From Fimbriosthenelais zetlandica (lineage: Eukaryota): a DNA stretch of 64,000 nt. Positions 6,484-7,931 of this stretch are shown here, piece by piece. Location of the stretch: assembly GCA_977030845.1 (NCBI GenBank), contig OZ365110.1, forward strand, positions 54,188,001 through 54,252,000. The letters run 5' to 3'. A model generated the notes under the pieces. That model saw only the letters and a list, made by a program, of their open reading frames with translations, was not told the origin of the DNA and ran no database searches. Made by a program: the position numbers and the translations under genes. Positions within the stretch are counted from its first letter, which is position 1. Every line of letters begins with the position of its first letter.

Positions 6484-6912
6484 TTAAGCGTTTGTCTTTT
6501 GAGGTGTAGTGGTAGGAGACACATCAGGGGGCGTCGACAGCCGGGGCTGGAGAGCCAGTCTGAGGGGGTCCATGGGGGGAGGAGGGGCGGGCAGGGATGC
6601 TGGAGGAATACCTCCAACTCCAGGTGACAGTTTGTGACTGAGGTCTGTAGAACTCACCATTATATTCCCGCCCGTCGCTCCTGAGATGGAGGATACAGAG
6701 AGGGGAATAGATGTGAGAGAGGGAGGCGGGGGAAGAGCGGAAACGGGAAGAGGAGCAGGATGTAGGATCCGACTCATGATCCCCGCGGCGAATGTCTTCT
6801 CACCCCCTCCTGTTCCCCCTCCCATGGCGTTTGGGGAAGAGGAGGAGGAAGGGGATGAAGGGGAAGAGGGGTAAACAGTTTGTGGTGAGAGCTGTTGTTC
6901 GGCTATTCGTCG
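6484..6912 (-). other. Candidate stop-codon readthrough extension of Hmx (142 codons + TAA)
   Basis: In frame with the Hmx CDS directly after TGA-C, with no stop from 6912 to 6487. S/P/G-rich; GC content drops after the second stop. Confidence 0.5.
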
Positions 6913-7931
6913 TCATACCATGCTCGGGAGGCTGGGCCTGAGGGCGGGTAGTTGAGAATAACTTGATGGGTAGTACATAGGGTGGTAGGTGGGTAGGCTC
7001 GGGGCATACGCCGGGTGACTGCTCGAGTCAGAACCTCCCGAGTGCGCATGCGCACCGGAACCGGAACCTGACTCGTGGTAGAGTATGGGCACGCGCACCA
7101 TGCGTTGTGCGGCGTGCGCCATGTTTGCCGCCTCCAGTTCCGCAGCCAGTTGCCGCTTCCACTTGTTGCGTCTATTTTGGAACCAGATTTTCACCTGCGT
7201 TTCTGTCAGGTGGAGACTAGCTGCCAGACCAGCTCGTTCCGACGACGATAGGTAGCGCTTCATATCAAACGTCGACTCGAGCTGGAAAACTTGGCTGCGA
7301 CTGAAAACCGTCCGTGTCTTCTTTTTCCTCCTGTTCTTGTCATCGTTAGCTGCGGACGACGGAGAGGAGGAGGACGAAGAAGATGTGTTAGCACCGGAAG
7401 CAGGTGTGTTGGTGGTATCCTTGGCAACGTCAGAACCACCGTGATTGGCTGATGGGGAGCCAGGGCGGGCGCCATCTGCTGACGGTGATTGTAATGAGGA
7501 GTGGTCACCTGACTCGCTAACACAGTCCGACTTAGAATCGTCCAGCATCTCGTCGTCATCATCAAGTAGTTCCGGGTCAATCGGGGATTCAGAGCGTTTG
7601 TCTGACCCCGCTAGGTGAGGGGACGGGGAACGGGAAGAGGAACGGGCGGAACGACCCGGACTGTGGGAACGGGGGCTGTGAGGGGAAGACCTACCATGTA
7701 GGTGGTGGTGGTGGTGGGTGGATGAGGAAGTAGTGGTGCTAGGGTGGTGGTGGTGGTGGTGGTGGGGGTGGCCAGGGAAGGCTGGATGGTTAATAGATGG
7801 GTGGTGGGGGTGGTGTGGGTGGTGTTTGGAGGAAGGACTTGCTCCAGGGTGGGATGTAAGGGCTGGGTGGTGGTGGATGCTGGTAGACAGAGGGGTGGAT
7901 GCTGGAACGGCTCCAACTGTCATTGCAGGAC
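6913..7931 (-). CDS. Hmx: Hmx/NK5 homeobox gene, coding exon 2 (homeodomain exon)
   Basis: Acceptor ttttattatattttccag| at 7932 is phase-compatible with exon 1 (C+GT = Arg). Encodes [60 protein letters not shown], then [26 protein letters not shown] (Hmx-specific) and ends [11 protein letters not shown]. Spliced CDS 1698 nt, 565 aa. Confidence 0.96.
7150..7329 (-). other. Hmx: Homeobox (60 aa, NK5/Hmx class, Q50)
   Basis: Direct translation; WFQNRR helix 3; the [11 protein letters not shown]-type middle is typical of Hmx. Confidence 0.97.

Follow-up and report, generated by a model that had tools for sequence, protein, structure and literature searches.

Does the homeobox gene Hmx always end its protein at the first stop codon, or is part of its product extended by programmed readthrough of a leaky UGA-C? 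The question is raised by a stretch of 64,000 nucleotides (hereafter the window), in which the Hmx reading frame runs into a TGA followed by C and then continues for well over a hundred codons before a second stop is reached. A first-pass annotation of the window had proposed a long, readthrough-derived Hmx isoform. We examined the identity of the gene and of its host, the properties of the open frame, its conservation in other Hmx loci and the explanations that compete with readthrough.

An Hmx gene of spiralian type

The gene lies on the minus strand of the window, and all of its features are given here by window position on that strand. Exon 1 (11926 to 12604) begins with the ATG at 12604, encodes an EH1-like FSISSIL motif and ends at a phase-1 donor, GACC/GTAAGT. 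The coding part of exon 2 (6916 to 7931) follows the acceptor ttttccag/GT, carries the homeodomain and ends in the C-terminus ...LRPSLPSMV. The spliced model obtained from these sites yields a canonical product of 565 amino acids. Upstream of the TGA the ORF contains a Pfam Homeodomain (E=5e-22), and its best named matches in a protein search were HMX3/Hmx proteins. The features that define the Hmx (NK5) family were all found, namely the homeodomain, the Hmx-specific flanking stretch and the C-terminal end R-P-x-L-x-S-[LMI]-V. Hmx has a conserved role in regulating sensory and neural cell fates. Exon 2 also holds runs of His codons (7700 to 7790, minus strand), which are common to the close relative described below.

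Nearly all bilaterian Hmx proteins have a C-terminal end of the form R-[PA]-x-L-x-S-[LMI]-V, and 36 of the 37 homologues with the Hmx C-terminal motif stop exactly at its end. The version in the window matches the nemertean form (...LRPSLPSMV in Lineus) and that of a set of ENA sequences, and is unlike both the insect (...SRAPLSSLV) and the malacostracan (...VRPTLSSLV) forms. In a maximum-likelihood tree of Hmx, the window falls into an unresolved group with Lingula and the nemerteans, and into neither of two well-supported clades, that of insects plus spiders and that of the malacostracans. An insect, chelicerate or malacostracan placement of this Hmx is contradicted by the C-terminus and the tree alike, and the sequences are of a nemertean/brachiopod-type spiralian kind. 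The arthropod setting in which the first-pass annotation had placed its argument is probably wrong.

The host, probably an annelid, would lie outside the insect and crustacean clade of abundant readthrough. Abundant readthrough has been inferred only 'following divergence from centipede' (Jungreis et al. 2016, PMC5100048). Since the host is probably not an arthropod, the prior expectation of readthrough from insects and crustaceans is not transferable to the Hmx case.

The open frame beyond the first stop

Around the first stop the minus strand reads CCG AGC ATG GTA TGA CGA CGA ATA, with the TGA at 6915 to 6913 and the following C at 6912 (6912 to 6915 together); the context is TGA-CG in both of the species compared below. 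The in-frame extension, which we refer to as the tail, spans 6487 to 6912 (minus strand) and comprises 142 codons. It is rich in Ser, Pro and Gly and probably disordered, and its counterpart in the relative (L001, 7141 to 7587) has 149 codons. The second stop, TAA-A at 6484 to 6486 (minus strand), lies 16 codons past a conserved tail motif. The first-pass annotation had described these elements correctly: the coding sequence ends GTA-TGA-CGA, translation of 6912 to 6487 returns the same 142 residues, and a long form of 708 amino acids follows from 565 + 1 + 142. The mixed synonymous codons that it had noted in the Pro and Gly runs are likewise visible in the sequence.

In the window interval, frame 0 is free of stops, and each of the other five frames contains 2 to 8. 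Dinucleotide shuffles of the window tail gave a probability of 0.025 for a stop-free frame 0, in agreement with the earlier rough estimate of a few percent. For the relative the same probability was 0.13, and the joint shuffle probability that frame 0 is open in both the window and L001 was approximately 0.003. GC content remains at 0.55 to 0.60 across the window tail and falls to approximately 0.38 just below 6480, so that the drop comes after the second and not the first stop, as had been claimed.

Neither AATAAA nor ATTAAA occurs inside the tail in the window or in L001. The first AATAAA downstream in the window is at 5420 to 5425 (minus strand), approximately 1.06 kb past the second stop, and the first such hexamer in L001 is at 8221. 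A run of N, either an assembly gap or masked sequence, is present at approximately 4740 to 4900 of the window, some 1.6 kb beyond the second stop and possibly in or just past the 3'UTR. Elsewhere in the window (17300 to 26700 and 45700 to 47000), long CT-rich simple-repeat tracts coding for Pro, Ser and Leu give rise to spurious ORFs of 140 to 280 amino acids; they include a tandem unit reading PTPYLSPPPNPLPFSPTQPLTFLPH.

Conservation in one close relative

The only close relative found was the protein P0001, encoded on the ENA contig L001, which matched 68% of exon 2 at 80% identity in the protein search. A second copy, L007, is 96% identical to L001 over 13 kb and comes from the same ENA sample (ERZ25767047); the two are either divergent haplotypes or the products of a very recent duplication. 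The comparison of the tail covers two species and three sequences (the window, L001 and L007), too few for a PhyloCSF-type statistic, and approximately 24 to 32 codons can be aligned.

In both L001 and L007 the coding sequence ends GTA TGA CGT CGG and is followed by 149 in-frame codons up to a TAG-C. Frame 0 of the L001 interval is without stops, and the other five frames hold 3 to 7. The alignment of orthologous 3' ends, which had been put forward as a check on the readthrough proposal, came out in its favor: in L001 and L007 the stop is again TGA-C, the extension is in the same frame and of similar length, two blocks are conserved as protein, and frame 0 is stop-free.

The two species are far apart. 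Between the window and the relative, dS was 1.06 and dN 0.063 in the 3'-terminal 150 codons of the coding sequence, and synonymous divergence is saturated. A blastn comparison over approximately 13 kb aligned only the coding sequence, the His-codon repeat, a block of 55 nt within the tail and a single distant non-coding block (CNE); introns and UTRs were unalignable. The middle of the tail (approximately 100 of the 142 codons) could not be aligned as protein or as DNA, and the frame is nonetheless open in both species.

Composition offers a further view of the tail. GC at the three codon positions of the L001 tail (0.69/0.56/0.74) mirrors that of its coding sequence (0.64/0.60/0.82). With a codon table cross-trained on the coding sequence of the other species, frame 0 was the top-scoring frame in both tails, at a score of 0.06 to 0.19 that lies far under the 0.43 to 0.49 of true coding sequence. 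The L001 tail contains no Met codon, and a separate AUG-initiated ORF is for this reason excluded in L001. Runs of His and Gln are found within the L001 tail as well.

Between L001 and L007, differences per kb amounted to 23.7 in the intron, 0.9 in the coding sequence, 2.2 in the tail, 5.0 over the 2 kb that follow, and 26.8 farther out. The tail differs by one nonsynonymous change and by no indels. It is constrained between these two copies, yet polymorphism does not distinguish it from the 3'UTR next to it, which has 5 per kb. Viewed along the contig, the density of mismatches falls from approximately 25 to between 0.9 and 5 per kb in a region that takes in exon 2, the tail and some 2 kb presumed to be 3'UTR.

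The CNE lies approximately 5 kb downstream of Hmx, at 1502 to 1606 of the window (minus strand) and 12232 to 12336 of L001; over 106 nt the two species are 74% identical. None of its six frames is free of stops, and it contains several TAAT-type cores (GATAATG, TAATGAG and GCATTAG). We consider it a candidate Hmx-linked enhancer.

Conserved blocks within the tail

Two blocks of the tail are conserved at the protein level. The first comprises the first 12 tail codons (6877 to 6912, minus strand), which read RRxxxxxxSPxT in an ungapped register from the stop that is common to the relative. Five of these 12 residues (R, R, S, P and T) are identical, each through a different synonymous codon. The probability of a 5/12 match after the stop was approximately 0.003 by composition and 0.009 when determined empirically.

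The second block (6535 to 6570, minus strand) is the motif DPLRLALQPRLS, after which comes an S/T-P-P site; all 12 residues of the motif are identical in the relative. The motif differs between the species by four nucleotides, all synonymous (AGA/AGG, CTG/CTC, GCT/GCC and CGG/AGG), corresponding to a dN of 0 and a dS of 0.5. With a synonymous share of 0.31 among the possible changes, four out of four would be synonymous by chance with a probability of approximately 0.01. The distance from the first stop to the motif differs between the window and the relative by 8 whole codons, and the motif is separated from the second stop by 16 codons in the window; in the relative, where that stop is TAG-C, the gap is 15. 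The motif is Leu-rich and is followed by proline-directed Ser/Thr; a docking or phospho-regulated interaction site would be a reasonable guess from such a sequence.

Searches for homologues of the tail returned no matches with phmmer against 1.84 billion representative proteins, a weak negative given the low complexity of the tail and the shortness of the motif, and no Pfam domain was found in the tail. The features of the tail in the ESM Atlas showed only a sub-threshold resemblance (<=0.83) to the disordered tails of nuclear regulators, which we treat as a lead and not as evidence. A degenerate DNA scan of JGI metagenomes gave a sole match to DPLRLALQPRLS, DPLRLAFQPRL, on a bacterial contig of 68% GC, and this match was set aside as a chance occurrence.

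More distant Hmx loci

Seven more distant Hmx loci served as the outgroup set, and among them L003 is the sister of the pair formed by the window and P0001 in the Hmx tree. All three stop codons are represented. The stop is TAG-C in L002 and L010, with the next in-frame stop after 84 codons (3718 to 3969) and 6 codons, respectively; TAG-G in L003, with the next after 17 codons; TAA-C in L004, L005/L006 and L011, with the next after 2, 11 and 60 codons, respectively; and TGA-G in L009, with the next after 34 codons. GC content at these seven loci changes from 0.53 to 0.66 before the stop to 0.22 to 0.50 right after it. Over the 300 nt past the first stop it is 0.56 in the window and 0.65 in L001, and only in these two species does it stay at the level of coding sequence. 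The motif DPLRLALQPRLS is absent from all frames of the seven outgroup loci.

The 84 codons past the stop of L002 have a GC content of 0.39 and are rich in Cys, Leu and Phe; they are non-coding-like, differ from the tail and provide an example of the chance background.

Three traits that the outgroup loci lack, namely the tail, a coding-like composition of the tail and a stop changed to the leaky UGA-C, therefore appear jointly as the derived state of one lineage. The proposal of a translated extension through UGA-C readthrough is supported by conservation in one close relative; the more distant Hmx loci lack the extension.

Readthrough and its alternatives

Three of the features by which readthrough is recognized comparatively were found at this locus: a conserved stop, a frame 0 that is open beyond chance and, over 24 to 32 alignable codons in two species, substitutions of the protein type. 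The case is drawn from sequence throughout. We regard functional (programmed) readthrough of the Hmx UGA-C as the best explanation of these observations and as a likely one. That ribosomes in fact read through the stop, the rate at which they would do so and the action of the motif are inferred.

The reading that comes next would make the interval an untranslated 3'UTR, rich in GC and pyrimidines and stop-free by chance, in which the motif block was conserved as a regulatory element acting in RNA or DNA. The shuffle probabilities are unremarkable when each species is taken separately (0.025 and 0.13), the codon-usage signal in the tail is weak, the next 2 kb of UTR are likewise constrained between L001 and L007, and the CNE shows that another non-coding block has been kept at 74%. 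Against this reading, all four changes in the motif and all five N-terminal matches follow frame 0, the frame of the ORF and of the upstream coding sequence. The spacing between DPLRLALQPRLS and the second stop is preserved as well, and none of the seven outgroup 3'UTRs has such a composition or such an ORF. Combined as if they were independent, these tests give a probability of approximately 1e-5 or lower. We consider a purely untranslated tail unlikely.

Somewhat less probable again is an alternative last exon joined by splicing, in which only the motif-bearing end would be coding and the stretch from the stop to the motif would be intron or UTR. Two routes can be drawn, and our low estimate applies to them jointly. 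By the first, the phase-1 donor of exon 1 would be joined to a CCAG/ acceptor just upstream of DPLRLALQPRLS, giving an isoform without the homeodomain. In both species a phase-1 AG does occur within the 5 to 10 codons that precede the motif (...CCTCCAG/CA in the window and ...CGCCAG/GC in L001), but any 15 codons are more likely than not to hold an AG in a given phase by chance. By the second, a weak phase-0 donor that overlaps the stop codon, ATG/GTATGA, would be used. With its G at +5, GTATGA is a better donor than the GTATAA or GTATAG of the outgroups; for such a donor, however, no suitable acceptor, a phase-0 AG that follows a pyrimidine tract, is available in the window before the motif. 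Splicing by either route would fit an unalignable tail middle, but would leave unexplained that the approximately 114 to 122 unalignable codons are open in frame 0 in both species, that the 12 codons directly past the stop show protein-level conservation and that GC between the first and second stops is like that of coding sequence, where introns here have approximately 35 to 38%.

We give very little credence to a different recoding of the UGA, by selenocysteine or by A-to-I editing to UGG, or to independent downstream initiation: the stop is UGA in both species and the window tail holds an ATG-started sub-ORF of 113 amino acids, but no SECIS family was found in Rfam scans with E up to 1 (2500 to 7000 of the window and 7100 to 11500 of L001), no conserved double-stranded structure of the kind that editing requires surrounds the stop, the L001 tail is without any Met and the residues immediately past the stop are conserved.

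RNA structure was also considered as a stimulator of readthrough. A CU-rich/GA-rich hairpin in the window tail (6781 to 6871, minus strand) has a folding energy of -47 kcal/mol and a z of only -1.7, and its equivalent in L001 reaches -17 kcal/mol with a z of -0.5; a 3' stem-loop as a conserved stimulator was rejected on these values. No stable structure was found right after the stop, with a z of +0.3 for the first 80 nt in the window and no comparable structure in L001 (z of -0.5 and -0.2). The readthrough reading neither depends on a conserved structure nor is strengthened by one.

Proposed mechanism and significance

Under programmed readthrough, the Hmx mRNA would continue through the tail. 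The majority of ribosomes would terminate at the UGA-C and release the canonical protein of 565 amino acids, and a fraction would decode the UGA by a near-cognate tRNA and go on for 142 codons to the UAA-A, producing the isoform of 708 amino acids. The added tail would be mostly fast-evolving and disordered, with a short conserved start (RR...SP.T) and, near its end, the linear motif DPLRLALQPRLS followed by S/T-P-P. By analogy with the Drosophila factors vvl/Drifter and traffic jam, the tail would probably alter the partner binding, localization or stability of the Hmx transcription factor.

A broader possibility, which we put forward only tentatively and hold to be doubtful at present, is that regulated readthrough is no speciality of insects and crustaceans but a regular part of annelid (spiralian) gene expression, extending to core transcription factors of development. 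In that case the long Hmx would be a functionally distinct regulator, whose DPLRLALQPRLS-S/T-P tail recruits a partner or controls localization or stability in particular neurons.

If the readthrough of Hmx is true, a fifth of one Hmx product is missing from current annotations, and with it a motif that is under selection. Hmx would then be a homeobox gene with comparative support for readthrough outside the insect and crustacean clade, in animals that, according to the published view, lack abundant readthrough, and it would raise the question of how widespread readthrough is in spiralians.

Comparison with known systems

The suggestion that Hmx readthrough had no earlier description agrees with what we found in the literature. 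Hmx is absent from the table of Drosophila and Anopheles candidates (Jungreis 2016 Data S1, PMC5100048), which names, for example, vvl, kel and hdc. No paper was found in the readthrough literature that links readthrough with Hmx, the Hmx of annelids included, and the text of a 2026 Drosophila preprint makes no mention of the gene.

The Hmx locus nevertheless resembles the Drosophila and Anopheles candidates (Jungreis et al. 2011; 2016, PMC5100048) in its conserved UGA-C, its conserved in-frame ORF and its substitutions of the protein type. As in those candidates, the gene is of a regulatory or neural type, and the extension is long and disordered and carries a conserved short motif. It differs from them in the breadth of comparison, which is 2 species here and 12 to 21 there, and in its host, which is probably an annelid.

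The closest parallels in kind are vvl/Drifter and traffic jam. Readthrough extensions of these two Drosophila factors are reported to change their activity in a tissue-specific manner (PMC8417969; Karki et al. 2022 as cited in PMC13278127). All three are DNA-binding developmental transcription factors that gain, or in the case of Hmx would gain, a C-terminal extension by readthrough. The sequence of the Hmx tail is unrelated to theirs, and the stop context of vvl is UAG-C where that of Hmx is UGA-C.

The only annelid case that we found is the FVa/EFLGa neuropeptide precursor of Platynereis, for which read-through has been proposed (Conzelmann et al. 2013, PMC3890597). There, too, a second coding region without a start Met is kept in a second annelid, much as the L001 tail of Hmx is without a Met. 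The Platynereis gene encodes a secreted neuropeptide precursor, whereas Hmx encodes a transcription factor. The support also differs in kind: the extensions of vvl/Drifter and traffic jam were demonstrated in vivo, and the Platynereis proposal comes with antibody staining, whereas the Hmx extension is known as a pattern in DNA. Readthrough is an already known phenomenon, including for transcription factors, and it is Hmx, together with its probable spiralian host, that is the new addition.
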